A DNA stretch of 63,979 nt, filler included, from Dimorphilus gyrociliatus (taxonomy: Eukaryota; Animalia; Annelida), in NCBI GenBank assembly GCA_904063045.1. It is 4 parts of 4 records of this genome, joined end to end, with 100 filler letters (N's around TTAATTAATTAA, not from the genome) between each part and the next. Parts side by side here need not be neighbours in the genome. Positions count along the whole stretch, not along the records: positions 19,009 to 50,972 come from CAJFCJ010000130.1; 3 more parts are not named here. One strand, written 5' to 3'. Numbering within the stretch: the stretch's first letter is position 1; every line of letters begins with the position of its first letter. The notes beneath the pieces were generated by a model. It did no database searches, was not told the DNA's origin, and was given only the letters and a program-made list of their open reading frames with translations. The translations under genes and the position numbers were made by a program. Below are positions 9,044-50,972 of the stretch, one piece after another.

Positions 9044-10690
9044 ATGTTAATATCAAAAATAAAAAGGATCACTGGTTTAAAGAAAATAAATGAAAATATA
9101 TTTGCATTGGTTTATTGGGAAGATAGAAATTGCTCTTGGGAAGACATTAAAGATATCAACTGCCCACTACTTCTACATAATTTTTTTACTAAATGTCAAA
9201 GAATACAAGAACAATTTAAAGAAAGGGATGAAATGAAAAAAAAAAGAGAACAAAGAAATTCGATGTTTCTGGATTTAAAGAAAACTCAAAAAAAGGTAGA
9301 AAACACATCAGTCGAGTCTATACAAGAATTAAAAGAAGCAAGGTCTTTCATTTCACATAGTACCATTCAAGTAAATAAATCACGTATCGAACAGAAAGAA
9401 AGCTCTATTCGTGATAAAAGAAGAAAAATAAATGAGAAATTTTTAAATGACAGACGATATTTCGAAGGAGCTCCAATTAATAAGCCGATACTTGATACAT
9501 TACCTAGACCAATTTATAAAAAAGAGTATAGACCAGAATTTGAAGAAAACGTTATGATCTATGAATATAAAGGCAGACCTATTACTAGATTTCAATGTAG
9601 TTCTGTTTTTTCATCTGGTATTACTACCCCCAAAAAATTCAAACATAGGCAGACATTGAATATTGAAATCGTTAAAAATTTGTTCTTTAGTTTAAGACAA
9701 AGTCGTGACTTTGATCAAGTTGGAATATTTAAATTAAAAAAGATTGATGGGGATATTGGTCATGAAAGAATATTCGAGTCTGTGTTAAGTGCTAAATATG
9801 CTATTATTGATCATTCTTACAAAGGTACCTCATTGATTTGTACTGCAATTGAAGAATTTGAGCCATATTATATCAATGGTATTTATAACTATGTCTTCAT
9901 TCCTATAGAATGTATAGATCTACGTTTTTTATGTAAAGAATCTCTTGATTTAGATAAATATCATGCTAGTTCATGGAAGACATACTTGCCTAGTTACCAA
10001 ACGTTTATTGAACAACAGGCTCTATTTTTTAGCAATCTTTCTGTGAATACTAAAGCAAGGTTTTCAATAGTTTCGGGGTCTTGTGATTTAATTTCTAACT
10101 ACCTACAAAAACATTTAATGGTCTTGGATTGTATACAGGTATCATTATCTACAACAGATGTTGACTATGTTTTCATTTGTGAAAAGCAGTTAAAATTTTT
10201 CACGAAAACAGAGATTTTTGAAAGTTTGATTACCACCAAATGTCGTTTTTTTATTTATAATATGCATAGAATTTTAAAAAAAGAAAATGTTTTTTATGAG
10301 GTTTATCAAGAAGGCGGCATATTTGTTCCATCGCAGTCGCTTTTAGAAAATCCGGATATTCCTTATGCTTTTGATTTAATCCAATATTGTAGTAATAATG
10401 ATAAAAAATGGAAAGTTATGGTACCAAAAGAAGTTATTATTTTTTTAAGAAATAAAATAAACTCGTTTAAGGGGTCTATTATACAGCAAGGTTATATACA
10501 TTTAACTAATATTTTAAACAAACATATTATTGATTTTTCACAAGATAAAATAGATGACTATCTCAAAGAAATTATCAATAAAAATTTAATTACTCATCGA
10601 TTTTTCTATATTATCGATGATATTAAAGAACCAACTCAACATAGAATATCTCCAAGTGACGCCTTGAATCTTTATATAAAAAAATTTTAA
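9044..10690 (+). CDS. Chromodomain-like protein with a large uncharacterised C-terminal region
   Basis: Long intact ORF. N-terminal IKRITG..ALVYWEDRNCSWEDIKDINCPLLLHNF resembles the chromodomain LVKW..TWE pattern, followed by a charged coiled region. Confidence 0.6.
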   Translation: MLISKIKRITGLKKINENIFALVYWEDRNCSWEDIKDINCPLLLHNFFTKCQRIQEQFKERDEMKKKREQRNSMFLDLKKTQKKVENTSVESIQELKEARSFISHSTIQVNKSRIEQKESSIRDKRRKINEKFLNDRRYFEGAPINKPILDTLPRPIYKKEYRPEFEENVMIYEYKGRPITRFQCSSVFSSGITTPKKFKHRQTLNIEIVKNLFFSLRQSRDFDQVGIFKLKKIDGDIGHERIFESVLSAKYAIIDHSYKGTSLICTAIEEFEPYYINGIYNYVFIPIECIDLRFLCKESLDLDKYHASSWKTYLPSYQTFIEQQALFFSNLSVNTKARFSIVSGSCDLISNYLQKHLMVLDCIQVSLSTTDVDYVFICEKQLKFFTKTEIFESLITTKCRFFIYNMHRILKKENVFYEVYQEGGIFVPSQSLLENPDIPYAFDLIQYCSNNDKKWKVMVPKEVIIFLRNKINSFKGSIIQQGYIHLTNILNKHIIDFSQDKIDDYLKEIINKNLITHRFFYIIDDIKEPTQHRISPSDALNLYIKKF

Positions 10691-11855
10691 ATATCTATAA
10701 ATAAAGAATAAAATATAATAACATCTATTTTTATATAAATATATATACGCTGTACCTTAAAAAATATGGTCTTCCATATTTTTGTAACTTGTATACAATT
10801 TCGTTTGTTTTATCAAAATTGAATATATACCAAAATTTTTATAATTATCTACTGAACCTTCTATGCGGGGGTCTAGTCTATTTCAATACCATTTTTAAAT
10901 ATTTTTATCTAAAAACTTTAAAAAGAGTAATTTTCATTATATATTTAATAGTATAACCATTCTTTTTACCGATGAAATAAAAACGCTTTTTTTAAATATA
11001 AATGCTGACTTTTAGCAGATTCGTAGCTTTAAATATCTCTATTTCGCGCTCTAGCAGCTATTAATTTATCCCTTTTTAAAAGTTTTAATTTTTTATTTTG
11101 ACCTTGATTATTGAACAGAAATTCTCGATAAGACTAAATTCTAGAATTAGTTTTAGGATAGCATTATTATTATTATATAAGTTTACTTGTATGTTAAGGA
11201 ATATTATCTTATAAGAAATAAAAGTGACTTCTAACTTTAGAAGCTGATATTAATAAACTAAAATTTAGTATATTAAAGTAATACGTTCTATACATTTTTA
11301 AATTTCTAATTACATTCTTACAGAAATATGATATCAAAATCCCCGCATACTAATACTGCCCTACCTAAACTTTAATGTATTCCAAAATTTTCGAATTTAT
11401 CTGATTTCCTGAAAACGATTAATTGGTAAAATTTGCATTGCCCCTTTAAAACCAAGTTATATTGAACTGTAATGGTCTTAACACACAAAGAGCGCAATGA
11501 GAAAACAATGTTTAGTAAAAGTTTTCTGTCATATTTGATGGATTTAAACATACTAAAAAACAAAAATGTAAAATACAGCCGTATTTTAAACGAACCAAAA
11601 TACTAGAGAAGGTTTTATTTGGTCTTTTAAATCAAAAAAATGTAATGAAGGTTAATTCTTTATTCGTGCTCAGTCTATTTTCCTAGAATCAAGGTCCTGT
11701 TTATAAAATCGTTTTTATTATTTATAAATGGCGTTTCAAGACCAACTCTTAAACTCTTTAAGAAAATCCACCCCCAATCATAAATAATTTATTACAGTTT
11801 TAGGTTTAATAAGACGATCCTATAATTAAAAAACTAATAAAATCGATTGGTCGAT

Positions 11856-19008: not shown

Positions 19009-19160
19009 TTTTTTTCAGATCAAATTTTATTGAAACAATAAGAAATGATATTTTAGAAAATTGTAAATCTTTTTCTTTGAATTTCAACAATTCAAAAAAT
19101 AATTAAAATTTTAAAAAAATGTAATTTCTTTCTCTCTTTTTTTAAATAGTTTTAAATTTA

Positions 19161-21390
19161 TTGAATGAGCTTGAAAATACTGAAAATATTGACTTTATGA
19201 TTCAAACTCATAACAATGAAAATTATACGGAATTATTCATTCATCCTTGTCAACTAGATTCTGATTGTAGTTGTCACAGACTTTTATTGTATTGTTTATG
19301 TATTTTTAAAACATTACACAAATTCCATCAACTTCATATTGTTATTGATGAAATTTCATTTAAACACATTTTTTACAAGGTAAAGAAAAAGTTGGAAGCA
19401 AATGTTTGATTCCATTTAGAGAAATTAAAAAAAAATTCTTTTTAAAAACAGAAATCTGACAATAAATTAGTTTTTCATGTAAAAAAGCTATGTTATGGTG
19501 ATGAAAAAGAGAAAATGAAAGATATCTTCCAAGGAGGGACTATTTTAAGACAGCTATTATACGAAAACTGTTTGTTTTGCCTTTAATCTTTCTTTCTTTT
19601 GAAATTTGTCAACTATCAACTGTTGAAAGGGTATTTTAAGACATTGAATTCAGTAGTTAATAGTTTAATTTATCTTATAAAGAATAAACAATCTTCTCGT
19701 CTGAGTATTTCTTACATTTATCTTATCTTCTACTCTTTATCTAACAACTGCTGGAAGAGAATATAAACCCGTCCAAATCTTGGTAAGTCATTCAAATGGA
19801 TGAACAAAACCAAATGTAGGTTGATCGCCATAAGAGTACCGACAACAACAGAATGTGAGGCTAGGTCCCTAATGAGCTAATCACTATATGCAAAAGAAAG
19901 CCAGTAGAAACACTAGATGAGAGAGAAGAAGAAATTAATTGAGCTATCACAGAGATGCAACAAGAGATCGACCCTACAGACTCACAAAATAAACAATAAT
20001 ACAAGTCAATCTCAAAGAGTCCAGCTTAGGAGAGTTAAGAAGGATAAGAATCTGAAACAAACATGTCCGCTTCTCATAGATGGGAAGTTACTGATCTGAG
20101 TTTTATTAATTCGAAAAATACATGAAGACAACTGCCTTGCAGGACTGGGACACATGAGGAGGACGGTGAGGGAAGAATACTGAGTGTTCAACAAGGTGGC
20201 CATGATCCGGAAGGTCATTGATAAGTATCGTTTGTGTATCCCTTTCTGTAGCAAGAAAAAATAAGCTAAGAATGATCACATGCCTTTTGACTTTCAATTC
20301 AATGACAGTGATTTGGCAATCTTTGAAAAATGTTGCAATAGACTAGACCCCTTCTCGCTGGTAGATGGTAAAAGACTTTTGTCCTACTGGCAAAATCATG
20401 GCTTGGAAATCACGGAGGGCATGGATGCAACCTTCACGTAGCTGGCATTAGAAAAAATAGGATGTGCTACAAAAAAGCTAGAAATCTATGGTTTTATCCT
20501 AACTCTTAGATTGAATCCTCCTAAGTACATTTCAATAGCTATCTTATTCCTCCCAACCATTTCCCAACCAAAATCTAACCTTCAATTATTTCATTTATTT
20601 CGCGAATGGTTCTTTTTAGCCCCAAGACACCCTATTAGGGTGGAGTACAGAAAGTCTCAGTTAAGACGGCCCGATAAAATACTTAACTTTAAGAAATGTT
20701 TGGATATTCAGTGAAATATTACAAAATATTTGTCTGAATGATGTTGAAGAGTTGAAATTTGATTATTCAAAAATAGGTTTTCATATTTGCAATTCAGAAA
20801 AATTCAACAGTTTAAAACAACTTAAAAAGATATGTCTGAAGAATATTTCTTTTAGTGAGAAAGCTTCAAGAATTGTTGTCAATTTTTTTAAAACTCAAAC
20901 ATATAAGTTTTGCACTGGATAATGATTCCAATACTGATACCTTTGCTCAAAGAATGGAGGATGAATTAAATTTAAACTCAAGATGCCAAGATACATGTCA
21001 ATGTTCATAATTGTATCAAGTACTTCAATTTACAATGATGAATAAAAATTTGGAATTTTTTGGAGCTAATTTGCTGAATATTGACATAACTGCAACATCA
21101 TTTCTTATGGAGTTATTTAGAGAAAATACTATGAATTTGAAAAAGGTTGATATCAATCTAAAAACAATTGATTGTTATTTGAAATTGGCAGATGTTTTAA
21201 TCACTCAGAAAAGTTTAGAGAATTTACACTTACATGCCAGTCATATGGACAACTTCGGTGTTTTTTTTTGCAAAAAATATCTTGTATAATATATTTAAAA
21301 AATCTGAAGAAACATGAAAACAATTCTGATCTGAATAAGAAAACAGAAGAACATTTAACCGAGTTATATTGGAAATTAGTGTCATTCTAA
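19161..21390 (+). pseudogene. Disrupted RNI-like leucine-rich-repeat gene
   Basis: Fragments PIKYLTLRNV..VEELKFDY..LKQLKKICLKN (from 20671) and LKKVDINL..LENLHLH show LxxLxL periodicity; stops, frameshifts and an internal insertion. Confidence 0.45.
20100..20250 (+). mobile_element. BEL/Pao LTR-retrotransposon integrase (zinc-binding region) remnant
   Basis: LLIRKIHEDNCLAGLGHMRRTVREEY*VFNKVAMIRKVIDKYRLC aligns with the Pao pattern LII..H....H.G......R..YW....VRK.I..C..C; lies in a GC-richer insert (about 19740-20660). Confidence 0.55.
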
Positions 21391-21646
21391 ATATGTTATT
21401 ACATGTTTAAGTGTCTGATTTCGAATAAACTATTAAAATAAAATATCTGTTTAAAGATTCCAGTAGAAGTAGTACAATATACTGTATATATCTATTGTCT
21501 TATCTTATTGATAGGCAAATGTTATCTTTTCCAACTGTTTTCCTATCAATTGTTGGAAGAGAATATGATGATAAACGACTTCTTTTGTATTTTAAATGAA
21601 CACATTTATATTTAGAGTAGTATTGTATTATCGTTCAGATATTTTC

Positions 21647-22342
21647 TTACTTTTTTCCGTTCCATTCGTCATTGAATTGTTGTAAAAATTGAAGCATATA
21701 TTGATGTCTACCTTCAGCAATATCTTTACCAGGTTTCGTATTCATTTTATCCTTTAATAGTAACAGTTTCTCGTAGAAATGATTAATGCTCGGAGCGTTA
21801 TTATTCTTATAAGCTTCGGCTGTTGCGTATTTAACGGGTTGAATATCTGGATGATAGATAAGGCGATTGCGATGTCCACCGTATGCAAACGTTCTAGCAA
21901 TACCAACAGCTCCAATGGCGTCCAATCTATCAGCATCTTGTACAATTTGACATTCTAAACTAAGATTATCCTTATCATTTTGATTAAATCCACCTCTAAA
22001 TGATATTTTAGAAACAATATTTTCAATCTCATTTGCATATTCATCGTTTAGTCCGAAATCTTTTAAACAATTAATTAAATATTGTTTACCCTCTTCTTCG
22101 TTACCTTTGAATAGCTTATAATCATTAATTTCGTGTACTAAACACGCAATTTCAATACTATTTTTATTGATTTCATCATCTTTGTAATAGCTTGATAATA
22201 ATTTTCCATTGTTTACAACGCGAACAATATGAAACCAATCGTGTCCACTACTGTCGCCAGTCAACTCATTTTTAACCCATTCCTCTATTCTTCCGATTAT
22301 TAATTTTATCTCTTCTGCATCTATTCTTCCTTTGTCGGCCAT
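21647..22342 (-). CDS. Bacterial-type HD-superfamily hydrolase (YpgQ / COG1418-like), intronless
   Basis: GHDWFHIVRV, HEIND (HD changed to HE), VQDADRLDAIGAVGIARTFAYGG and HFYEKLLLLKDKMNT..G...A..RH..M..FL.QF..EW span the whole family domain; intact ORF. Confidence 0.92.
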   Translation of the reverse strand: MADKGRIDAEEIKLIIGRIEEWVKNELTGDSSGHDWFHIVRVVNNGKLLSSYYKDDEINKNSIEIACLVHEINDYKLFKGNEEEGKQYLINCLKDFGLNDEYANEIENIVSKISFRGGFNQNDKDNLSLECQIVQDADRLDAIGAVGIARTFAYGGHRNRLIYHPDIQPVKYATAEAYKNNNAPSINHFYEKLLLLKDKMNTKPGKDIAEGRHQYMLQFLQQFNDEWNGKK

Positions 22343-25300
22343 TTTCTATGTCAGCGAAAAGCATGCACACTTTTTAAGAAGTGAGGGAGGCATGTTTGGG
22401 TAAGTATGTGTGTAAACTACAAATAATAGTAGTCTCAATGTGCAACCTTTTTATGTTTGTATGTATGAGCGATGATAGAAAGGATTGATTGATTTAGTTA
22501 CTACTTTTTAATCATTATTAACACTATTGAAGACTAGTTTTAAAATAATATATCAATAAACGCCCTCTAGTTTAATATTAATGCAATGAATTGATACTGT
22601 TACATAACGTGATGTAATAGTCTTTCATGTTGATTAGCATGTTAATAACTTATGAAACATGAACTTGTTACATTCTATCTTTGCAGACCATCAACCAGGT
22701 GAAATAAAGCTTTGGTAAATGTATAAAAGGAGATGCATATCCAAAGCTCTGTAGTCCCTAATCTCTAGCTGCAAGAAATTTAAGATAAGATTTTGGAGTG
22801 TTTCCAGGGTTGGAAAAATTCAAATTATACTTTCTCCAAGCTGTTTGGGCTGAACTTTGAGGATTGGAAAGGACATAAAGAAAAGAATTAAATTAATTGT
22901 ATGGGTTAGGGTTATTGCCAAAATTCTAATAAATAGGAGAAAAACATTTTGATAAGATGAATGTTACATCTGTTGTCTTTCATGTTTGATGTTCTTATTT
23001 CTAGACTATAATTAAGATATCAGCAAAAATTGTTCAGTTATAAGATTTTTATGATATTTTAAGAAAATAGACTTAATAAGAAGAGAGCTTTTATCATATT
23101 TCTTCATTTTTTTATTGCAGAGGCTTGCATTATGCTACGTAAAGTTGAAATTTTCCTATTAATCTATTCTTTCAATTATTAATAATAGCGAACAGTTATT
23201 CTATATTTCTTCTTTGTATTTACATTGTTTTCATTAAAAGACTCCTCTTATTTTTCTTCTTCTTTTCATTGGAATGTCACTGACTCATAGGTCAGCTTTT
23301 TTAAATTATTAGATATCATCGTATCTTTGTTTTCACTTTGATATTTTACGTCAAGAAATTCAGCTGTTCAGTACATTTTGAGTTAGGCACTGCTGCCATC
23401 TTGCGGCGATTTATAACCATATTTGTATGATAAAAAAATTATTGTGTTTTTGTGTCTAAAATGTTGATGGAACCTCAAAGTAAGTTGTAACAGATAAATA
23501 ATCATATCTAATTTGCTTATTACCAATTTATTGTAACACAGGGAATTCAGAGGATTCCACAAAAGGGTTGCAATACTTTTCCATTAAATAAACAGATTAC
23601 AATTAGACAGTCAGCTTCTTTTATAAGATGTAATGATTTTTGTAACATTCAGTTGAATTAATCAATTTAAATGTTTATAATCACCTTTACAATAAATTCA
23701 ATGTGTTCTGGATAGGAACACTACGAACACTAAACATACTCAGATCCTCCACTCTGTAAAGGATTTGATTAAGATTTATTTATTCAAATTGCAAACAGAA
23801 CTGCCAGCTATTCATTAGAAGTCAGTCTATGCAACTGCGAACTGTTGATACTTTCTCCTTTTCTCAGCATTTTTAAATTTTTAATATGGAACTCAATGAA
23901 AAACCTACTTTTATTTATGAATTTCACTGAAGCATTGGTACATATAGAACATCAACTATGTCTTTAAGCAGGTAGGGTTATCTTTAGCTGTATTGCTAAT
24001 ATCTACTTGTATTACAAGTGAGGGTTGGAGAGAACATAAAAAGCAGAATCACATCACATAGGTAGGATATAGTTATAAATAAAATACTAAAAAATAGGAC
24101 ATTTTCTTGGAAACTTATTTTATTTATTGTAGTACTTTGATATGCATATGCCAAATCCAAGTAAGATCTGCTGATATCAAGCAATCTTGCAGGAGTTAAT
24201 TCTCCTTCAGTTCACTAAACTATACTTAGGTAAATTTTGATTGAAGTCGCCATTTGGTAATGATATCAAAAGATTTTCTGAAATTGATTTCCAATTGAAA
24301 ACAATGGCAGCATGGATAAAAAGCAATTTTGCAATGAATTTACTCCAAGAAGCACTAATGAAAGTATGTACTACATTATTATTATTTTTCCTATAATGCT
24401 CAGTTTTCATTGTTTGTTTTATTTCCAGAGAGGACGTCTCATTGGAAATTACTATTTCAAGTGTGGCGCATGCGCTCTAGCTCCAAGATCCAAGAAATGC
24501 CAAAGAATCATTAGATTGTGCATGTTGAAATTTGCAATTGCAATTTCAAAATTGTAATGGAAAGTCAATATAAAGAATTTAAGAGATTTTAGTTTTTTAA
24601 ATAGCCATCTTCATTCAAAGAATGGAATGTTATTTTATATAATAAATATTCTGATTCCTTCAAATCCTAAATCTTTCTGTACTGTGTTTTTTATCCTTTT
24701 TTTAGTAATCATAGGAACTTCTTTTATTTGACAAGATATAACTTTCTCTTCATTCATTTACTATTCACCCAAGCATTTTCTTTTTAGTAAACTTAGAGGA
24801 GTAAATGATTACCATAACCAAGAATAGCTACATATTCATATTGGTTTTGGGCAATAAAGAATGCCTTGTCTTGTTGTAACAATTTTATGCATAAGAGAAT
24901 TCTATTGGTGTGTAGGTCTTATGAGTAGACAGATTAGTTGGCGAGGATTAATTACCCTGTTTCATATCTGTATCTTGGTGCCTTTATTGGCAGAGTAGAG
25001 TCATATCTCACTTACATGTTACCCATTATGGTACTTTTATTTTTGTTTTTAAATTATCCAGTCTCGTTTAAAAAGAATTCTGCTCTTTGGAATTTTCCTA
25101 ATAAACATTCCAAAAGCGTAAACATTACATTTCTCATTCTCAAAAGTCTTTACTCTGACCTTATTAATTGTAAAGTAAAACTATCTATTTTTTCTTCATA
25201 AAAATAAACCCTTCCTGTTCATTAGTTCATTATCTTTATCTTCACCATTCCGACAATCAATCTTTCCATCTTTTTTGTAGAATTCTGTCCTCACAACTAA

Positions 25301-25828
25301 ACTGTATTTTGGAATTGAAGTCTATTTTTTTTTAAATAATAAAGAAAGTTTGAATTTTCAAATTTTAAAACACTATCTTCTACATAAGTATTTGAAATAC
25401 TTTCCACTATAAAACAGTTATGATTCCAGCTGTCATAACAATTTCTTTCATTGTTACAAATTTCCTTATCTGTATATGCCATATTAATAAAAACACCATT
25501 GTTTTCAGATGTAAATTTTCAACAGAAATTTGTGAATTTTGTAAAAAAAAGTAATTTCAAATCAGGAATAATCTTTGTAAAAAAGACAAACAAAAAGACA
25601 AACATTTTTTTTTCAATATAAAAATTTACTTTGCAATTTTTGACAAATGAACAAATGAGAAAGCGTTTGAGAGCAACTCACAAAATTATAGTCCATATGA
25701 TATCAGATAGATTAGATCTATGATTTGACAATTGATTGTTGTATAGTATTTTTCCGCTGGATTTCAACAATTTACAGTCTGAAAATATTCAAAAATGGAG
25801 GAAGAGAATGTCTTTGATTGTCTTTTTT

Positions 25829-26034
25829 GGGATCGACAGAAAACGTCTACAAATAAGAAATTTCGAGACTAGATTTTGGATTGAGAAATGGTTAGGGAGA
25901 GGAAGACAGCAACTGATTTGTACTTAGAAGGGTCTCCTCTAACGGTTAGGGGTATTGGAAAAGATTAGGAACTGTCAAAGGCTGGATTAGGTTAGGGTAA
26001 AACCACTGATCTGTGGACGTTTTCTGTCGCGTCC
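25829..26034. mobile_element. MITE, about 206 bp, with telomere-like internal motifs (copy 1)
   Basis: TIRs GGGATCGACAGAAAACGTC and GACGTTTTCTGTCGCGTCC; internal TTAGGG/TTAGG motifs. Confidence 0.75.
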
Positions 26035-27314
26035 GTCTTTTTTGTTTACTCGACTCTGTAACCTCGTTAATGTATTTTGCATTTAAAACACAAGCGCTAT
26101 TTAAAGCATCAGGAATAAATCTTTTTAGAATAGAAGAAACGTTTCAGTGATGGATGGCCACTTAAATTTGACAAATCTATTGTAGATTATTTCTATTGTT
26201 TTATAAAAGATACTTTTAGTAGAATATCAACTTTTTCTATTTTGTTTAATTTGTTACCTGTTAATTCAAAAAATGTACAATTGAAACTGTATTTATCCAT
26301 TTTTGTTTTAATAATCTCAATTTTCATGTTTGATGTTTTATTAAACCATACAAAACTTGAAAGTTTGAAATTGCAGTTAGGGTTAGAAGATTGAAAAATT
26401 AGTTGAACCGCAAATTTTTTCCTCTCATTTTCAAAGCCAATAACTTGATAAATATTTTCATTGTTCCTTAAAAGTAATTTGTGTTAAACTTAATCTAAAA
26501 TCCTTTTCTCCGAGTTTGCTGCAGCTATTTCTCGTCCTACTGCAAAATTATTTCCCTACTATACATATTGTTGATTTTTTTCAAAAAGAATTACTGTTGC
26601 TGCCAGTTTATTTTTCTTTAATTTAAAATGAGAGTATACTGAGTCGTATCCCAAATTTTTGCAAAGATTTTTTCTCTGTTTCAGTGAAAGGCTCCTGTGC
26701 GAAAAAAATGGAAAGATTCTGGTTTATTTGATTTTACTTTTGAAAATCCTTGAATAAATATTTTTCTGTTGAAATCTTTTAAAAGTGATAGAGAAACATT
26801 TCCAAGCATATTTGCATTTGAAAATTGCAATAAAAAGATTAAAAATTAATGGGACATTGAAGAATTTTAAGCAAAAATTCTCTGACATTTATAATTAACA
26901 AAAGGTTTGAATTAATAAACCCTCAAGTGTCCATTGTAACTTTATTTATCATTTTATTTTCATTTTATTGAGTTGTTGTAATTCTATACCATCTAGAAAA
27001 TAATGAATATAAATATGTAAAAGCCTATGAAAAGGAAATTTCACTATTAAAGTAGAATTGATCTCTAGAAAATGTGTTGAAAAATTTAAATTTAAAGAAA
27101 AGAATTTTTGAAGAGAAAAAGATAAAATATTTATTTACTAATAGAAATTATTTCAATTAAACATTGTTGAACATTTTATAAAACATTACATTTGGTAATT
27201 TGTTATTGTCATTGGTAAATGTTGACTGTTCAAAAATTATATATACTTTTCGTAATGAATTGCAAAAAATTCTATATTTTTTTCACAATTCTATCATTTC
27301 ATTCAAGTTTTACA

Positions 27315-30300
27315 GGCAAAGTATTTCAACTATTTAATTATAATATTTTAGTTTTTTAAATTAACAGTATGTTGTAAATTCGACAAAGATTGTTTATATT
27401 CCTATGGAAAATGTATTAATGGAGTTTGTCAATGTGATTATTCTTATGATAAAGAGATTTGTAGTTTAGGTAGATATTTTGTAACTTAATGTTTAATAAA
27501 GATTTTTATCACATTTTTATCTTCATTTTTACAAGGTGTTGATTATGTATCTACTAGATCCGATTGTTATGGAAATGATATAAAATCGACAGCATTACAA
27601 AACCATGTGCCTATTTCAACACAACTTTCACAATGTTTCAAGCTGTGTCAAAACACAATTGGCTGTAATAGTTTGACAATGACAGTTAAATTTTCTGCGA
27701 AGAAGAATAAATGTTATTTGAAGAAAAAATGCAATTATAGAATATATAAAGGAGGTTATTTCGACATGCTTTTAACAATGATCCATGTAGGTAAGATAAT
27801 GTTTGCTCTAAAAAGAGAACATTTTAACAAATATCATATTTCTTCCTGTAGATGAATTTGAAAGTCAATTGTGTCATGATGATTCAATAAAAGAGGTGAT
27901 CGTTGAGCAGTGTCTCTACATTCTTTGGAGAAAATACTCAAATTGTTCTTCTGGAAGATATTGGTATGATAAAAATTATAATAAATGGCATGAGAAATAT
28001 TTAAATGATGTCAATTCAATTTATGAAATAAAAAATGATATTCAAGAATATGGAAATGTAAATAATAATTTTGAAATTTTAAATATTTCAAATTCTTCTA
28101 GAGAATCTTTGCGAAATAATTTTTGTCACGGCATTCCATCTAGTGGAAAATACAATATTGCTTATAAAAAAGAAATAGAACATAATGGCAGAATTTCGAA
28201 TCCAGAAGAGATCTATCATATAAATCATATAGTAGATGGTATAAAAAATTCAAATGAACAGCTGGGTGGTTGTTCAAAACTATTAAAATTGAATACTATA
28301 GACGATAGTTCTCTTCCAATTTGGTTAATTATTGATCTAATTACGGATTATACAATAAGAGATATAGATATCTATTTGCCAAATAGGAGATTAGAAATTG
28401 GAATTCTTGAAATATCTGTTCAAAAATTCAAAAATATTCTCTTTACAAACAATTCTTGTATTACAAATATTTTTGTAAATATAACAAAAGAGATAAATAG
28501 ATTTACGTGTCAAAATTCTACCGTACCTGGTCAATATATCAACATTTCATTTATAGATACAAAACCGGAAGTGGTAATATGCGAAATTGAAATTTATACA
28601 AGTAAGAAAAATTTATAATTAGTCATTTTTGAAATGTTATTAACAACAATAAAACCAATCAATAAATAGATAATTTAGCGTTAAACGCTGATGTATTTGT
28701 TCTATCTGTTCAAAATTCAAAAAGTTATGGAGAATATTCACTAGAAGAGAAACATCTTTCACAAATGTATATTTCTAAAAAGCAAAAAGATCATTATTTC
28801 TCAATTGATCTATATGGAAAATTTCTTATATATGAAATATTTGTCTTTGAAATCTTTACAAAACGATTAAAAGTGTTTATATTCAATAAACATTTCTTAT
28901 TGAATAAAACTTTAAGCGCCGACGAAAAATGCTCACAAGTTCTTAATGAATTAAAAGGGGAAACTACTTCGATTGTGTGCAATAGGCCTATTATTGGACA
29001 ATTTGTTATGCTAAATGCCTACAGTAATAAAAACACTCAAATGAAATTGAGAAGAATTGAAATTATAGGCCTTTACATTGACAAACCTGGTAATAAAAGA
29101 TTTTTAGTAAACAATTCAAACATTATAGCAAAATTTAACTGTTTTATTTTATTATTAGATTTTATAAATATTGCAAGAGGGAAACCATGTTGGCAATCTT
29201 CCAACTATATAAATGTTAATCATACTGAATATCCATTTTATGCAACATTTGCTACTGATGGTTTTAGCAGACAACATTGCTGTATTACTAACTATGAAAA
29301 ATTTAAATGGTTTTATGTAGACCTTCTTAACCAATATAGAATATTTTACATTGGAATAAAAATGAGACATGTTAGTTATGGTATGTAAAAACATATGCAA
29401 GAAAAAATAATCAACCATTTTGATGGGGATTCGACAGAAAACGGCTCCGAAAGCATGGTTTTACCCTATCCCTAAACCATCCCCTATGTATCTCCAATCT
29501 TTTTCATTACCCCTAACCCTTGAGTGGGACCCCCCTAACTATAAATCAATCAATGCTTTTTTTCTCCTAACCATTTCTAAACCCAAAAAGCTGCCTTCAA
29601 CTATCCTACTTGAGGCCGTTTTCTGTCGATTCCTTTTGATGGTAGTCTTTTATAATTGTATTTTGTAGGAATTTCAAATATTTACAGTTTTTCTATTGAA
29701 TATTTTTAAATCTAGTTCACAGATATAAAAATATGATATATAACATTTTGGCTAAAAGAAACAATTCCATTAATTCTGGAATGGTAAATACTTCAGCTTG
29801 CTTATCAAATGACCTTGACAATTTAAAATCACGAATTGGTAGTACACTAATATGGAATTGTTTTCCGCCAAATGTTGGTCGTTTCTTAAATATAAAAGAA
29901 ACTACTGCAAATTATTTGAACTTATATGAACTTTATATTTATGGTGAATTATTTGAAGAATACCAACAACATCAAAATTATCAATTAGAAATTCCACTTG
30001 TTGAAGCAACTACAAATTTAAATTCATCTTGGGATAAAAATAATTCTCCTCTAAAATTAATTGATAACAATTTCTACAATGTTGAAACTATTCCAAAATA
30101 TTCTTCTTGTTCAGAAATAACATCAACAGAAGATATTTTTTTAACAATTAAATTTGATGATAAATATTTTGTGGAACAAATTATCTTTCAACCAATTATT
30201 GATGTTGAAAGCTCTTTAGACTATATTTTCTTTTATGTTTCAACATCAAATATTAATCACAAAATATTTTGTGAAAGTATCAAAAGCGATAACATAAAAC

Positions 30301-30763
30301 CATCAAATAAACAACTTTTGGAAATTAATTGTGAAACATCAGTTGTTGGAAATCAATTGTTGACTATTAAAAAGAAATCAGCTTTCAATCATTTTTTAAG
30401 TTTTTGTGAACTTAAAGTATTTGGAAGGAAACAAAGTAAAAAAAAAATTTTTTCAGATACATTAAATTTTTTACTTTTTTTTATCAAGGCAATGAAGACT
30501 ATCAACTTGAGTTAAGTGTTGTTAAAGAAGCAAAGCTAATTTTAAAAAGTGTTGACGGATTATTTGTAAAGACTGAGAAAAGAAAACATTTCTTCTCTTG
30601 TATTTCCTACTGCCAATCAACAAATTGCTCAGCATTTTCTTATCACTTCATAGAAAAAACTTGTATGGTTACTACTTTAAATGTAACAAAAGGAACTGAA
30701 AGTTTGCAACATTCAGTTGTAGTGTACTCTTTGTTTAGAGACAGTGATAATATTTATTGTTGA
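27315..30763 (+). CDS. Multi-exon secreted lectin-like gene: Cys-rich EB/EGF module, PAN/apple domains and several fucolectin (F-type)/FA58C-like domains; possibly partly disrupted
   Basis: CCKFDKDCLYSYGKCINGVCQC; DCYGNDIK..CFKLCQNTIGCNS..CYLKKKC (PAN); NIARGKPCWQSS..FATDG..WFYVDL (fucolectin); repeated ..CEIEI / FCELKVFG domain ends; final PAN-like exon ends TGA at 30761-63; short GT-AG introns. Could be more than one gene. Confidence 0.7.
29427..29633. mobile_element. MITE, about 207 bp (copy 2, opposite orientation), intronic
   Basis: TIRs GGATTCGACAGAAAACGG and CCGTTTTCTGTCGATTCC; internal CCCTAA motifs; collinear with the reverse complement of copy 1. Confidence 0.8.
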
Positions 30764-32148: not shown

Positions 32149-34603
32149 TCACTGACTTGGTCCAACTGATGTGAGTTTTTTATCACTTTGCGCTGTTCTT
32201 AATGTTTCTGCATTGACAAAGAATAACGCATATACTTAAGGTAAAAATAGACAGAGTAGTGTAAGAAATCCATTGGTTATTAAACAAATACCCAAGACAA
32301 TTACTTTATAATAAGCATAAAACATTGTGAAATAGGTTGGCAATAATACAATCCACAAAAACATTGTTGTTGCCACAGAAACAAATATATACCAAGATTC
32401 ATTAAAATTTTCAGGTAATTTCCTACCAAGGTAACCAAGGGTTACGCATAATGCTAGCAAGAATAGATTAAATCCCAGTGGAATAGCTAAAGCTATTGGT
32501 GGATTTGAACACGTTAATTCAACTCTCTTTTCGATTTCTATTGGTTGTATTTTTTCCGATGTTGGTTTCCATAAAATCAAACTCGTGATTATCAATCTCA
32601 TTTCAATTGTTAAAAAAAACAAATGTTAATATCATAAGGGCTTTATTACTGGACATTCTAAGCTGTTGTTTACCTTTTCCACCAGCCGCAAAGATTCTGT
32701 AAACCCGCTGCGTTTTCATCAATAGAGGAGTGTAGATGAGAGACGCTCCGGCATGAAATCCTATTCGATTTAACAAACAAGTAAGAAATGATGGTTTTGC
32801 AATTGGAATTAAAACTGTTGAATATTCTACTGTACTTCCGCAAAGAATTACAACGGATAGTTGATGAGATGACGCTTTAATAATTTTCTCATTTCTATAA
32901 ATAATATATATAATAATAATAATAATGTTACATAATAATCCAACTATTGATAAAATCAATAAAAGAATTCCAAGCGGATCATCCTATCTTACAAATTCAT
33001 CATCAATTTTAAGACAATTCAAAGCTTTTTCAGAATCTGGAAAAATCAAAAAAAATTTTTATGCTTTTAAAATCTTTAAATTTTCAAAAATCATTCCAAA
33101 CCTGGCCAGTAAAATTTTGGGCACTTTTCACAATCAGTTTGGTTATTTATTAGAATTTCATTCTCTCTACAATTTTTACAAAGCCAACAGCATTTAAGTT
33201 CCTGTTGTACTTTGATTTGTTTGTCTTTACACGGAAAACAACAAACTGAAGTTGTATTGAAACTTTTAAATATATTCAATGTTTCAGTGAGTTTTAAATA
33301 CGTTCCAACAGTTTCTTTATTCCATACATTGTTATCCCAAGTGCAACGATAAATCTCGAATAAACCGTACATATCGCCTTTATCATTGAATATATAACGA
33401 ACACCGCTCAGAGCAGATATTTGAGCTTTTCTTAAGTAATGCAGGACACTTTCTCCAGTTATGCATCCGTTCTAAAGATATTTTGAAAGTTATGTATATA
33501 AATTTATATATATGTATGTAATGAGGTTGGGTGCTAAAGTTCCCATTAATTAGGGTTAGGGTTAGGGTATTTGTTGAACACCCCTTACCAATTTAAATTT
33601 TATTAAATAATAAAATAAAACTGTTTTAAATAGCGTTTTTCATACTACAACTTTCAAAATTGATTTATCTCGAAAGGCTTCTGGACATTCGACTGATATG
33701 AGATCTTTTAACGCTTTTACGTAAACGTCTATACCGTCGGCTATTTTACTTTCGGCTGTTTCGTAATTAGGTTTTAGTTCGAACATTTTGTTGTATTTTT
33801 TGCATGTTGTATTAAAATCACAATTTCCGTAGTGTTCCCATTGTCTTTTTGTCCAAGGAATAACTGGTTCTGTTGGTGTTAGTTCATTAAAATATTTTTC
33901 AAATTCTATATCTCTAACAGCCGGATATACAAACATAAAACTTCCGTGTTGTATATAGCCCGGATGACGCCCGAAAGCGTCTGCCCCAAAAAAAAATGAA
34001 TTTTTCGTTGGGTGCCATCCTATTCATTGTTGAAAGTAGCATATTTCTCATAATTGGATGTAGAAAGAATACAATTATTCTTGCATTTTTAGTATCGAGC
34101 ATCTTTGCAACAATTTCATCGTAATCGTCAGAGCAATCTTGACTAAATCTTTTCGAATAACCATATTCCATATTTTTTAGTGTTCTTTTCCACATTTTTT
34201 GCTGCATTTTCCTCATAGGATCCTTCCATGTAAAGTAATTGAATATATATGTCCATCCAAAAGTTTTCATAACATCTGCCATAGCCTCTGTTGCGAATGT
34301 GTCTGATGGTACAAGTCGGGAGAAATACCTAAAACGGGCCTTATTTGACAATTCTACAGATGTTGAATAAACTCCAAGTGTAGGTAATTTTAATGCCGAT
34401 GTTAATCCAGCCATTGAGATGGATTGATCATCAGATGATGGAAATTCAGCTAATGGATAAACTGAATTTGAATATGATATAAAAAGTAGCCAAACTAAAT
34501 ATTTAAGCATTATCAAATCAAAATCGTAAAATATCAATTGCTCTGCCCAGTCTGGGAAGAAGTAAGGATAACTAATGCAATGTATATTTATAGTAAACAT
34601 CAT
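32149..34603 (-). pseudogene. Metabotropic glutamate receptor-like class C GPCR, disrupted
   Basis: Venus-flytrap motifs YSTSVELSNKARFRYFSRLVPSD..FGWTY, Cys-rich CCWLCKNC..C and 7TM_3 motifs LLMKTQRVYRIF and RKLPENFNES. Multiple frameshifts and an in-frame TAA at 32236-38 (LFLP*VY). Confidence 0.85.
33550..33567 (+). repeat. Interstitial (TTAGGG)3
   Basis: Three perfect units inside an intron of the mGluR-like locus. Confidence 0.85.
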
Positions 34604-39441: not shown

Positions 39442-40429
39442 TTAGGTTCACCCTGAAAGTTTTACCCATTTCCCTGTAATTTTAAAACGGTACATTGTAG
39501 GCCTATGTTATCATTATTAATAGAAAGTGAATTCATTAATGCACTATCACTAAAAAACTTTCACAAATTGTGATCCCTGAATGAAAAGTTATTGAGACTT
39601 CAGTGGTGGCACAGTATGGATGATTGTATAAAGCAGAGAGTAATTATTCAATTTCTTGCATCACAGCAAGTTACTGCAATCAATATTCACAAGCAATTGA
39701 AAGCTTTTTTTTGGTAAAACAACACTTGATGAAAGTTCAGTAAGAAGGTGGGTTAGAGAATTTAAAGGAGGAAGAACAAATATACTTGATGATGATAGGA
39801 AGGGACGCCCAAGAACAGCCAATAACGATGAAAATAAGGAGAGAGTTATTGCTATAATCAAAGATAATAGGAGAATAAGCCAGGCTGAGATATCTCAAAC
39901 ATTGAACATAGGTCATGCTGCTGTTGAAGATTTGATTTCCAGTCTTGGGATGAGAAAGATTGTCTCAAGATGGATTCCCTACTGACTTGATTGGTATCAG
40001 AAAGACAAAAGGGTAGAGATGTCTACAGAACTCCTAGAAAAATATGATGAAGAAGGAGAGGATTTTTTGTCAAAAATTGTCACAGGAGATGAAACATGGA
40101 TATTCTATCATGAACCATTGACTAAATGGGCTTCTTTAGAGTATCATACAAAGTTTTCTCCACCACCAAAAAAGGTTAAAACAGGCAAGTCTGCAGACAA
40201 ATGGATGGCATGTGTGTTTTGGGACAGGGAAGAGCTTATTCACCTAGAATTTTTAAATTCGCAAGTCAGAATAAATTCAGAGCTTTACATCAGCATTTTA
40301 AAGAGATTAAAGCAAAGAATCAATAGAATCAGGCCAGGTAAAGAGGTGATTTTATTACAAGATAATGCCAGATCTCATACAAGCTTACAAACTACTCAAT
40401 ATCTTAGAACAACTGGATGGGTACTATAA
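39442..40429 (+). mobile_element. Mariner transposon, 3'-truncated
   Basis: TA then TTAGGTTCACCCTGAAAGTT (left-TIR-like); SVRRWVREFKGG..GRP, SRWIP, IVTGDETW, LLQDNARSH. Ends before the third catalytic Asp; no right TIR found. Confidence 0.9.
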
Positions 40430-44335: not shown

Positions 44336-45304
44336 ATGGAAGAAGACAATTTGAAGAATACAACACTTTTTCATGATGATAAAGAAGATTTTGGATTTTT
44401 CAAATCATTCTTTATTTACATGGGAATTATTATTGCAGTTGGTGTGCCTACAAATTTTCTTATATTATTCTTTTACAATTTCAAAAAGACATTTTCACCT
44501 AGCGATATTTTTATAAAAAGTATGGCAGGTATTGATATTATAACCTGCGGAATTTGTACACCTTATAGTATTATATTGGAAATTGGGGTGATAAACAACG
44601 GTATCATTTGTAGAATAACAAAATTTATATATCATTACATTCTAGTCTTTTCGTCCTTCACATTCATATTTGTTGCTATTGAAAGATGGTTCTGTATTTG
44701 TAGACCTCTTATAAAGCTTACAAAGAAACACACCAAACTGATGTTTCTAACTATTAATTCATTTGCCCTTACAGCAGCAATATTCAATAGTCTTATTCAC
44801 AATGTGATTACAGACAAAAGATTTGATGGCCGTGTCTTGAAGACATGTTTCCCAGTAGATGGATTAATATTCAAAATTCATACCTACGTTCTTAATTTCT
44901 TATTTATATCGGCTATATTTACTCTGTATTTCGTCTACGGTCTTATCTATAAAGTTATCATAAAAAGAAGTTTGAAATTCAGAAACAATAATGTTGACAA
45001 TAATGGAAAAGTGTTAAAAGATCGTAGAATTTTCCTTAAGAATGTTAGAACTGTAACTATGCTTTTTGGTGTAACAACCATATATTTTATTAGTTGGTTT
45101 CCATATTCATTTACAACTGCTGGCATTTTGCCAAAAAACATATTTTTATATTATTGCTACCTTATTAATAATATTTCAAATTTCTTTGTTTATATTCTAT
45201 TTCAAAAACCATTTAGACAAAATTTAAAAAGCTTTTTTTTACGTAAATGTCAATCCTCTGTTGGTATCCAATCAATGAATAGCAATCATACATCAAATGG
45301 TTAG
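44336..45304 (+). CDS. Intronless rhodopsin-like (class A) GPCR, peptide-receptor-like orphan
   Basis: Seven hydrophobic segments; GVPTN (TM1), DIITC (TM2), AIERWFCICRP (DRY-like), ISWFP (TM6), NNISNFFVY (TM7), F.K.FR helix 8. Confidence 0.9.
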   Translation: MEEDNLKNTTLFHDDKEDFGFFKSFFIYMGIIIAVGVPTNFLILFFYNFKKTFSPSDIFIKSMAGIDIITCGICTPYSIILEIGVINNGIICRITKFIYHYILVFSSFTFIFVAIERWFCICRPLIKLTKKHTKLMFLTINSFALTAAIFNSLIHNVITDKRFDGRVLKTCFPVDGLIFKIHTYVLNFLFISAIFTLYFVYGLIYKVIIKRSLKFRNNNVDNNGKVLKDRRIFLKNVRTVTMLFGVTTIYFISWFPYSFTTAGILPKNIFLYYCYLINNISNFFVYILFQKPFRQNLKSFFLRKCQSSVGIQSMNSNHTSNG

Positions 45305-49455: not shown

Positions 49456-50972
49456 CAGTCCCGATAAAAAGTCTCGGCCAGGGTTGTTCTCAGAGTGGAA
49501 AAAGTGAATTATTTAACTAACAGGACTTGCTTAATTATCTTTTTTTGTTTAGAATGAAGGATAAGACATTTATACAACCGAATTTATAAATAGAATTCAT
49601 TAAAAAATTTTTCCTGCTTTACAGTATTTTTTATTTAAAAATTTTCAAAAACAAGGAGGAGAAAAAATTTCGGCCATGCTTCCAAAAAACTTATCAAATG
49701 TCAATTTTAAACTAATAGTTTATTGCATAACCTTTTTTTGGATAACTAGTCGACACCTTTTTTTGATTGATCTGTATAGATTTTTTATGTAGTCCCCAGA
49801 AATGGAAAAAAATTCATCTTTTATAAGTATCTTCAAATCATTCAAATTTTTGGGTAATTTTTCATAGACCCTCTTTTTAAGCACTGCCCAAAGGTTTTCT
49901 ATTATATTGATATCAGGACTTTGGGCAGGCCAATCTTTTATAAATTTTATTTTATTTTTTCTGAGGAATGTTTTAGAAATTTTCGAGGTATGGCATCTTG
50001 CCCCATCCTGCTGAAATGTGTTTTGTCTAGTGTATATAGGCAATAGATGATCTTTTAGAATCTCTATGTATTGCTGTGAATCCATGGATTCGTCACAAAA
50101 TGCAAGAGCTCTGGAACCATCACATTTTATAGCTCCCCAAATCATTACCTTGCAGTTCTTTGCTTTAAAGCTCTTTCTGCAATATTGTGGTAGATGTTTA
50201 TCTCCTGTTTTGCATCTGACTCTTGTCTTTTGCTTTGGGTACAGCTCCAAAGTTGATTCATCCGAAAATATGTAGCTTTCTATCTCCTCCTCAGTTTTTT
50301 TTAAGAATTTTTTTGGCAAAGAGAATTCTCTTCTTTCGGTTACCTGAGTTAGTCAATGGTTTCACCTTTGCCACATAGCTCTTTAGCCCATAATTATAAA
50401 GGATCTTCTTAGCAGAAGATAAACTTACCTTACCTGCCATACTCCACTCATTGTATGCCTGTCTGGCAGAAAAAAATGGGTTTTTTTTTGAATTATAATA
50501 AGATTCCTCTTATCTGATTTGCATATCTTTCTTGGACGACCAGATCTTGGTTTGTCTTCCATTGAAGAACATTCTTTTGCCTTTTTTAGGTTGTATCTCA
50601 CACTTGTACGAGGAATATTTAGCTCTTTCGATATTTTGACCTGGCTTAGCCCTCTTTTATTTAATTGTACAATTTTCTGTCTCATTTCAAGACTTATCTT
50701 GCCCATTTTTTAATTTTTTATTGTTCTGTTGTTCTCTGATTGTGTAACACTACTCAGGAAATGTCATAGAAAAATATTAATGGGGTTTTTGTCTGATAAT
50801 TATCTATTTTTTGGGCAGGAACAGGGAACATGGCCGAAATTTTTTCTCCTCCTTGTTTTTGAAAATTTTTAAATAAAAAATACTGTAAAGCAGGAAAAAT
50901 TTTTAATGAATTCTATTTATAAATTCGGTTGTATATATGTCTTATCCTTCATTCTAAACAAAAAAAGATAAT
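49456..50972 (-). mobile_element. Tc1-like transposon with DD35E triad and long IR/DR-type TIRs; right TIR cut by the contig end
   Basis: TA at 49454-55, terminus CAGTCCCGATAAAAAGTCTCGGCC; about 225-bp left TIR nearly identical to 50826-50972. Transposase 50706 to about 49710 with IFSDES, FQQDGARCH..WPAQSPDINIIE (35 residues between D and E). Confidence 0.95.

Follow-up and report, generated by a model that had tools for sequence, protein, structure and literature searches.

A bacterial-type HD phosphohydrolase gene, likely acquired by horizontal transfer, in the annelid Dimorphilus gyrociliatus

A 63,979-nucleotide stretch of DNA (filler included, referred to here as the window) from the genome of the annelid Dimorphilus gyrociliatus (assembly GCA_904063045.1) was found to contain an intron-less gene for an HD phosphohydrolase of the YpgQ/YedJ family. 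The gene is in the 32-kb piece at positions 19,009 to 50,972, which comes from CAJFCJ010000130.1. We consider it likely that this is a host gene that was acquired by horizontal transfer from a bacterium, has decayed paralogues, is transcribed as an unspliced message and encodes a working HD hydrolase. Linkage to host DNA, host-like composition, the paralogues, transcript-like contigs, purifying selection and a bacterial sister sequence all support the transfer. A preliminary description of the window had proposed an intron-less bacterial-type HD gene brought into an animal genome by horizontal transfer, and the linkage, the paralogues and the bacterial sister support that proposal. The coordinates of all features are collected in Table 1.

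The open reading frame (ORF) at 21647-22342 on the minus strand runs uninterrupted from ATG to TAA over 231 codons plus the stop and has no intron. The complete, intact ORF of the preliminary description, with its product of 231 aa, was thus confirmed. No other ORF within approximately 5 kb on either side comes close to it in length. The GC content is 28% for the whole 32-kb piece, 32.5% for the HD gene and 28-30% for its flanks. At third codon positions the GC content (GC3) is 0.24 in the HD gene compared to 0.22-0.30 in the exons of host G protein-coupled receptors (GPCRs) of the same piece. An argument for amelioration from these values was considered and found unusable, since the bacterial relatives are themselves AT-rich (GC3 is 0.23 for the relative P0002, described below).

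One possible explanation for such a gene is bacterial contamination or a chimeric join, in which the ORF of a worm-associated bacterium was mis-joined to animal DNA. This would fit with the closest named relatives being bacterial and with a gene that is intron-less and of the same size as its bacterial homologues. It does not fit with the read data. Contigs from public runs were compared over 20000-24999 and, in the source run, two of them (3755 nt, 20000-21703, and 2386 nt, 22070-24455) bridge both gene junctions at 119-126x, a depth no different from that of the flanks. In that run, the assembly graph breaks only at a bubble made by a paralogue. The source run is perhaps the assembly's own source and, hence, not independent evidence. 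Even coverage over both junctions had been named in the preliminary description as something to look for, and it was found.

Further evidence against contamination comes from the surrounding DNA. When the whole 32-kb piece was compared by tblastx with 82 bacterial loci, only 21600-22432 matched, and no other bacterial-like sequence was seen in the 32 kb. The flanks within this one contig had been described as animal-type, which held up: they contain class C and rhodopsin-type GPCRs and remnants of mariner and Tc1 elements. There are three copies of the gene on three host contigs with non-coding flanks in common, and one of them has a host repeat inserted. Finally, GC3 is the same as in the host genes and the closest bacterial match reaches only about 54% identity. 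Contamination is, therefore, already effectively refuted and we give it next to no chance. No co-transferred bacterial neighbours were found around the three worm copies or around the related gene P0001 introduced below.

Of the three HD gene copies in D. gyrociliatus, the window copy alone is intact. The two paralogues are on host contigs of 305 kb and 86 kb, and each has 3' or 5' flanking DNA in common with the window. The first paralogue, L001 (CAJFCJ010000046.1, match at 10212-10810), corresponds to codons 111-231 and about 240 nt past the stop, with 83% nucleotide identity. Its gene model, DgyrCDS14544 (149 aa; L001 10001-10575), is 88% identical over the C-terminal half and is the best non-bacterial match to the window protein. 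The source run holds a second variant over 21681-22010 at a similar depth. This variant agrees with CAJFCJ010000046.1 at 29 of 29 variant sites and is, therefore, the L001 paralogue within the same genome. The agreement also identifies D. gyrociliatus as the host of the window copy.

The second paralogue, L086 (CAJFCJ010000048.1, match at 10060-10425), encodes the protein P0122 (173 aa; L086 10001-10522). It retains codons 1-171, but two in-frame deletions remove GHDWFH and DRLDA and the 3' end is truncated. About 130 nt upstream of its ATG are still recognisably similar to the window, with a block of 18 matches in 19 positions around AAAAGGTTGCA, so the duplication took in 5' flanking DNA. 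Retroposition was considered as the origin of the 5'-truncated L001 copy and was rejected, as no poly(A) tract was found at the end of the homology and L086 keeps its 5' flank. Duplication at the DNA level is the explanation we prefer for both paralogues.

L086 also carries an insertion of about 205 bp that resembles a miniature inverted-repeat transposable element (MITE). The same repeat recurs in the window at 20498-20598, 25823-26046 and 29426-29629. The members of this family are approximately 205 bp long and 73-85% identical, and further copies are present at L001 5517-5734 and 12385-12549 and at L086 10426-10631 and 16968-17174. The L086 copy encodes the C-terminal 30 residues of the annotated P0122, and a window ORF at 25736-25927 is the element read as protein.

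Two other similarities between the window and the L086 locus were seen. A paralogue of the rhodopsin-family GPCR of the window (44336-45304) is at L086 10983-11726 on the minus strand, with 70% nucleotide identity, only about 0.4 kb from the HD pseudogene. The two copies differ in orientation, which suggests that they probably reflect a large gene family and not conserved synteny. Upstream of the HD pseudogene, L086 3234-6312 on the plus strand holds a gene with faint F5_F8_type_C matches only. It is possible that a larger duplicated block included this gene and the F5/8-type ORFs at 27869-30515 of the window.

Next, selection was estimated by the Nei-Gojobori method between the window copy and each paralogue. 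Against L001 (121 codons), dN was 0.060 and dS was 0.357, giving a dN/dS of 0.17. Against L086 (141 codons), dN was 0.104 and dS was 0.565, giving a dN/dS of 0.185. The copies have host flanks, the derived HE dyad and loop insertions in common, so this divergence accrued inside the animal genome and was mostly constrained. The dN/dS check suggested in the preliminary description was, thus, carried out between host paralogues and gave 0.17-0.19. When changes were polarised with five outgroups, the window copy had 2 derived changes compared to 15 in L086, and 4 compared to 6 in L001. These comparisons indicate that the window copy is the conserved one of the three and that it appears to have been under purifying selection after integration.

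Transcription was suggested by contigs from three further runs, X2 from another study (2017) under another organism label, and X3 and X4 from the source's study. Each gave a gene-sized contig that matches the gene with 0 mismatches at a depth of 38-81, and the flanks are at or near zero save for short repeats. Since the contigs align colinearly to the genome, the gene has no intron and the CATAG upstream of the ATG is read through. The preliminary description had noted this CATAG as a possible splice acceptor. The string is present 3 nt before the ATG, but in the assembled contigs, which are colinear to 22366-22369, it is not used as an acceptor. These 5' ends would give a 5' untranslated region (UTR) of about 25-27 nt and a good start context, gaaaATGg. 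From the shape of the coverage, we strongly infer that the contigs represent unspliced mRNA and that the gene is expressed. The variant bases of L001 were not seen in X2-X4; such contigs show presence and not absence. No canonical AATAAA was noted in the inferred 3' UTR (21304-21646). Stage-specific RNA-seq was produced for the D. gyrociliatus genome paper (PMC7854359), and a transcriptome exists under the old name Dinophilus gyrociliatus (PMC5006589).

A very high-copy short repeat is present at 22672-22838 (core 22707-22742), where depth in the source run reaches approximately 5000 compared to approximately 120 in the surrounding sequence. The transcript-like runs contain this repeat as well.

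Relatives of the window protein were sought among 5.8 billion proteins, a search that covers unannotated genomes through Logan gene calls only. Apart from the worm's own proteins, all named matches were bacterial; they came chiefly from Bacteroidota, with 46-54% identity. A profile built from the three closest proteins gave 435 bits for P0001 and 416 bits for P0002, followed by matches of at most 285 bits, among the best 120 matches listed. Among these, every named match below 285 bits was bacterial (Pontibacter, Draconibacterium, Balneolaceae, Nitrospinaceae and others), and the profile search found no further close relative and only one other relative in a metazoan context.

A maximum-likelihood (ML) tree of 81 rows was then calculated under LG+C20+F+G4 with PMSF. 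The window protein and P0001 are sisters with a support of 100/88, and P0002 is sister to both with 100/98. The trio is inside a 40-row set at 98/90, in which the named members are all bacterial (Pontibacter, Limibacter, Draconibacterium, Balneolaceae, Nitrospinaceae, Clostridiaceae and candidate-phyla lineages) and most rows are unnamed metagenome proteins. The phylogeny that the preliminary description had called for, therefore, nests the worm gene among bacterial-named rows with a bacterial-context sister. The trio is outside the block of Flavobacteriia, Sphingobacteriia and Chitinophagia, which is the source of the highest-scoring matches. A 46-row group seen in a quick tree was dissolved by this more careful tree. 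End branches are 0.69 for the window protein, 0.38 for P0001 and 0.47 for P0002.

P0001 is 57% identical to the window protein. It is encoded on a Logan contig of 12.5 kb with a GC content of 22%; three runs gave this contig in identical form, and it has no other long ORF. The gene (L002 8040-8690; SRR23372228, SRR23372231, SRR23372216, SRR31984834) is intact and intron-less, retains HD and has an AATAAA that overlaps its stop. It lies between MAM-like exon fragments on one side and LDLa-like, LRRNT-like and ERY-motif fragments on the other. The contig gave a sub-threshold match to LDL-receptor class A, and the MAM-like, LRRNT-like and GPCR ERY-motif pieces were recognised by eye. We read this contig as probably belonging to a second, AT-rich metazoan carrier. 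A reading in the ciliate code was tried and rejected: the ORF ends on TAA at the normal C-terminus of the family, and ORFs ended by TGA only are not gene-like.

P0002 is 54% identical to the window protein and shares its VVNN and KxFKGxEEEGK signatures. Past its stop come a terminator, made up of a GC-rich hairpin and a T-run, and a DUF3276 gene in convergent orientation (Pfam 1.3e-31). Among named sequences, this neighbour is most similar to ones from Crocinitomicaceae and Flavobacteriales, at 66-72%. The same HD-DUF3276 pair was found on a contig of 65 kb, next to a gene that encodes a Por_Secre_tail domain, the sorting domain of type IX secretion. Judged by its surroundings, P0002 is bacterial. 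The preliminary description had left the donor unsettled. P0002, as the nearest bacterial relative, narrows this question by pointing to Bacteroidota, probably Flavobacteriales-like. The most likely donor would be a low-GC member of the Bacteroidota of the Flavobacteriales type.

Other eukaryotic and archaeal sequences bear on a different explanation, in which the gene is an ancient eukaryotic one that was inherited vertically, kept in a few lineages (the annelid, the other metazoan and a ciliate) and lost elsewhere. The family is present in at least one other eukaryote transcriptome, that of the ciliate Litonotus pictus (P0128), and half of the members of an ESM Atlas cluster are eukaryotic (Streptophyta). 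In addition, an approximately unbiased (AU) test that forced the window protein, P0001 and Litonotus together did not reject this clade (p 0.124, lnL difference 32.6). However, the metazoan pair is sister to the bacterial-context sequence at 100/98 and Litonotus is placed elsewhere in the free trees. The lack of any further close relative among the best 120 matches to 5.8 billion proteins also speaks against it, as do the very many independent losses across Metazoa that it would need. We regard vertical inheritance as very improbable. The transcript P0128 (MMETSP) is of the YpgQ-type family and has a low-complexity insert; its nearest rows by path length are from Bacteroidota. An archaeal family member, P0160 from a Woesearchaeota metagenome-assembled genome, was outside the worm clade in the quick tree. 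Both could be further transfers or contamination.

Under horizontal transfer, the two metazoan genes may have come from one event in a shared ancestor, or from two independent transfers of related bacterial genes into D. gyrociliatus and the host of P0001. The 57% identity between the window protein and P0001 is about the same as that of either to P0002 (54-58%), which speaks for two events. No flank similarity or synteny was found between the window and L002, and P0001 has retained HD and does not have the two small insertions seen in the worm copies. The tree, by contrast, joins the two metazoan sequences as sisters (100/88) and leaves P0002 outside. We take two transfers to be a real possibility, somewhat less probable than one. 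A more specific version of the single event seems doubtful to us: one old transfer from a Flavobacteriales-like donor into the ancestor of Dimorphilus and the AT-rich metazoan, after which the gene was long kept and the switch to HE changed its metal or substrate preference, so that it became neofunctionalised rather than serving simply in nucleotide house-cleaning.

The assignment of the window protein to the family is based on several comparisons. The Pfam HD domain (PF01966) matched residues 38-142 with 27.4 bits, compared to a gathering cut-off of 22. Full-length matches in the PDB were 3djb (E 1.4e-53, residues 21-229), 3dto (6.4e-51), 5dqv, which is YpgQ (7.7e-35), and 3gw7, which is YedJ (8.2e-16), and 2qgs was also matched. 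An AlphaFold2 model built from 16 sequences is all-helical, with a pLDDT of 83.7 and a pTM of 0.83. A Foldseek search with this model gave 16 hits with E<0.001, all of them chains of the YpgQ-type family with TM scores of 0.64-0.84 by target. The top hits, 3djb, 3dto and 5dqv, had a probability of 1.0 and TM scores of 0.67-0.69 by query and 0.81-0.84 by target. The YpgQ/COG1418-like family assignment of the preliminary description was, therefore, supported. The NCBIfam YedJ model (NF007515/PRK10119) matched over the full length with 80.9 bits, far under its equivalog cut-off of 286, so the window protein is not a YedJ orthologue. On these comparisons, we place the protein in the YpgQ/YedJ-type HD family as an evolutionary member (a homologue) that may or may not be catalytically equivalent.

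The known structures show where the worm protein is alike and where it differs. YpgQ (5dqv/5dqw), 3djb (Bacillus thuringiensis) and 3dto (B. halodurans), like the window protein, have a single HD domain in approximately 210-230 aa that aligns end to end. They have the same all-helical fold and conserve the first His, the dyad His, the QDADRLDA block, R150 and H188. Identity is 31-41%, and the window protein has Glu for the dyad Asp. Unlike the members of the YpgQ group, it comes from an animal genome, its gene has putative UTRs of the eukaryotic type, and the protein is extended by 11 residues at the N-terminus and carries two small loop insertions common to the worm copies. No obvious signal or targeting sequence was seen by eye in this mostly acidic extension (no predictor was run). 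Escherichia coli YedJ (PRK10119, 3gw7) is a more distant relative of the same family.

The dyad region reads V-H-E (GTA CAC GAA), which places E71 next to H70. The preliminary description had noted that the eponymous HD is HE, and this was confirmed, with no other letter in the runs compared. Among 459 aligned homologues, 451 have D at position 71 and 8 have E. The eight carriers are the window protein, its paralogue P0122 and six other family members (P0134, P0139, P0164, P0181, P0204 and P0208), which usually have the motif LLHE[IMV]GD[WY]K. HE is, thus, rare (6 of about 457 other family members) but recurs as a natural variant of the dyad, and it seems to be unstudied. Across 17 tabulated motif positions, the window protein deviates from the family majority residue at 71 only. 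Majority residues that it keeps include H34, D35, H38, H70, D74, K76, D136, D138, D141, R150, H188, R212 and H213. Of the canonical H...HD...D ligand set, H34, H70 and D136 are present and position 71 is E.

Bacillus subtilis YpgQ, the one family member for which this activity is known, is a (d)NTP pyrophosphohydrolase that depends on Mn and has the metal ligands H29, H58, D59 and D124 (PMC8177086), in line with the statement in the preliminary description that YpgQ hydrolyses nucleotides. By homology, the window protein would most likely be a cytosolic, single-domain, metal-dependent phosphohydrolase that acts on nucleotides. Nucleoside triphosphates or related phosphorylated nucleotides would be hydrolysed at a mononuclear site for a divalent metal, made up of H34, H70, E71 and D136, with E71 supplying the carboxylate that D gives elsewhere. 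The nucleotide sanitation role and the altered metal coordination proposed earlier may also apply.

It is also conceivable, if rather unlikely, that the transferred gene is transcribed but does not encode a working hydrolase. In that case D71E would disable metal binding and the product would be a pseudoenzyme or a slowly decaying relic. In YpgQ, the Asp at this position binds the metal directly (PMC8177086) and, as noted, nearly all homologues have D there. Two of the three copies are already broken, and the end branch of the window protein is longer than those of P0001 and P0002. On the other side, P0122 has E71 too, so the low dN/dS built up after E71 was fixed, and every other tabulated motif position has the family majority residue. 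HE in six other full-length family members argues for tolerance, and the dyad variant, therefore, need not abolish activity if these relatives are a guide. Glu is a competent carboxylate ligand in general chemistry. That E71 predates the host duplications, that the other motif residues are intact under low dN/dS and that HE recurs in the family together suggest that the protein works. The probable effect of D71E is a retuned metal site, not a lost one.

In the history that we propose, a bacterial gene would have been integrated and its short promoter and UTRs either acquired or brought along. D71E would have been fixed before at least two DNA-level duplications within the host. The window copy would then have been kept under purifying selection while the two others decayed, and it would be transcribed as an unspliced mRNA of approximately 1.0-1.1 kb.

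Several points weigh against transfer of a gene that is still expressed and working. The public collection has no called gene with exactly the product of the intact ORF, and both decayed copies are called there; the absence of the intact ORF from these called genes does not favor our reading. The library type of X2-X4 is unrecorded, and expression rests on the shape of coverage in contigs that have no strand or poly(A) information. The dN/dS values were taken against copies that are now broken, which averages in a relaxed period of unknown length over 121-141 codons only. The canonical Asp of the HD dyad is lacking. In the tree, 29 of the 78 forks are open and the donor is not placed in a named clade, and the AU test did not reject the clade with Litonotus.

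Table 1. Features of the HD gene and its surroundings (window coordinates)
Feature	Position	Strand	Evidence or remarks
Intact coding sequence, YpgQ/YedJ-family HD phosphohydrolase	21647-22342	-	ORF list, Pfam HD, PDB matches, AlphaFold model and Foldseek
HD dyad codons CAC GAA (H70-E71)	22130-22135	-	direct reading; no variant in four runs
Inferred short 5' UTR, including CATAG; ATG context gaaaATGg	22343-22369	-	transcript-like contigs starting at 22366 and 22369
Inferred 3' UTR	21304-21646	-	transcript-like contigs ending at 21402, 21358 and 21304
Segment common with L001 paralogue, 83% nucleotide identity	21406-22010	-	blastn, tblastn
Segment common with L086 paralogue, 83% nucleotide identity	21864-22244	-	blastn, protein alignment
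Promoter-proximal flank resembling L086 flank	22343-22475	-	pairwise alignment
Transcript-like contig, run X2 (977 nt)	21358-22334		other study, other organism label, 2017
Transcript-like contig, run X3 (1066 nt)	21304-22369		source's study
Transcript-like contig, run X4 (965 nt)	21402-22366		source's study
Class C GPCR, multi-exon	32236-34603	-	two 7tm_3 exons (E 1e-22, 5e-22), ANF_receptor ligand-binding exon (E 8e-21)
Mariner-type transposase remnant, broken	40019-40429	+	Transposase_1 (E 6e-15)
Rhodopsin-family GPCR, single exon	44336-45304	+	7tm_1 (E 3e-15)
Tc1-like remnant, broken	49720-50319 and 50425-50706	-	DDE_3 (E 2e-17), separate helix-turn-helix-like ORF upstream

Two further observations concern the neighboring DNA. 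The region of the class C GPCR has further cysteine-rich exon-like ORFs at 33091-33936. The three long ORFs at 27869-30515 on the plus strand include one with a weak match to an F5/8 type C or NedA-like galactose-binding domain (E 0.002).

Compared to its bacterial counterparts, the worm gene is similar in sequence and different in setting. The Bacteroidota HD proteins of Lutibacter, Pontibacter, Draconibacterium and others are 46-54% identical to it over 94% of the length. Unlike the worm gene, the Bacteroidota genes and P0002 have HD instead of HE. They are also set in a compact, operon-like neighborhood, where they are accompanied by an intrinsic terminator and a DUF3276 gene in convergent orientation. 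Other bacterium-to-animal transfers, such as msp130 (PMC11878542), resemble the HD gene in being intron-less, of bacterial type, set among host genes and host-like in composition, and probably also in being transcribed and patchy in animals; they concern another enzyme family. Our literature search found no report of a transfer of the HD family to animals or of the HD gene in D. gyrociliatus, and the D. gyrociliatus genome paper mentions horizontal gene transfer only once (PMC7854359). The HD gene is, in our reading, a bacterium-to-animal transfer of an already known enzyme family.

Outside rotifers, nematodes and arthropods, there are still few well-supported examples of a bacterial gene that has turned into a working gene of an animal. 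This case comes with unusually full internal controls: an intact copy that is apparently transcribed, two decayed paralogues that date its residence, a second metazoan carrier and a bacterial sister in its native neighborhood. It adds a gene to the catalogue of D. gyrociliatus and offers a natural HD-to-HE variant with which the tolerance of the metal dyad in HD hydrolases could be probed.

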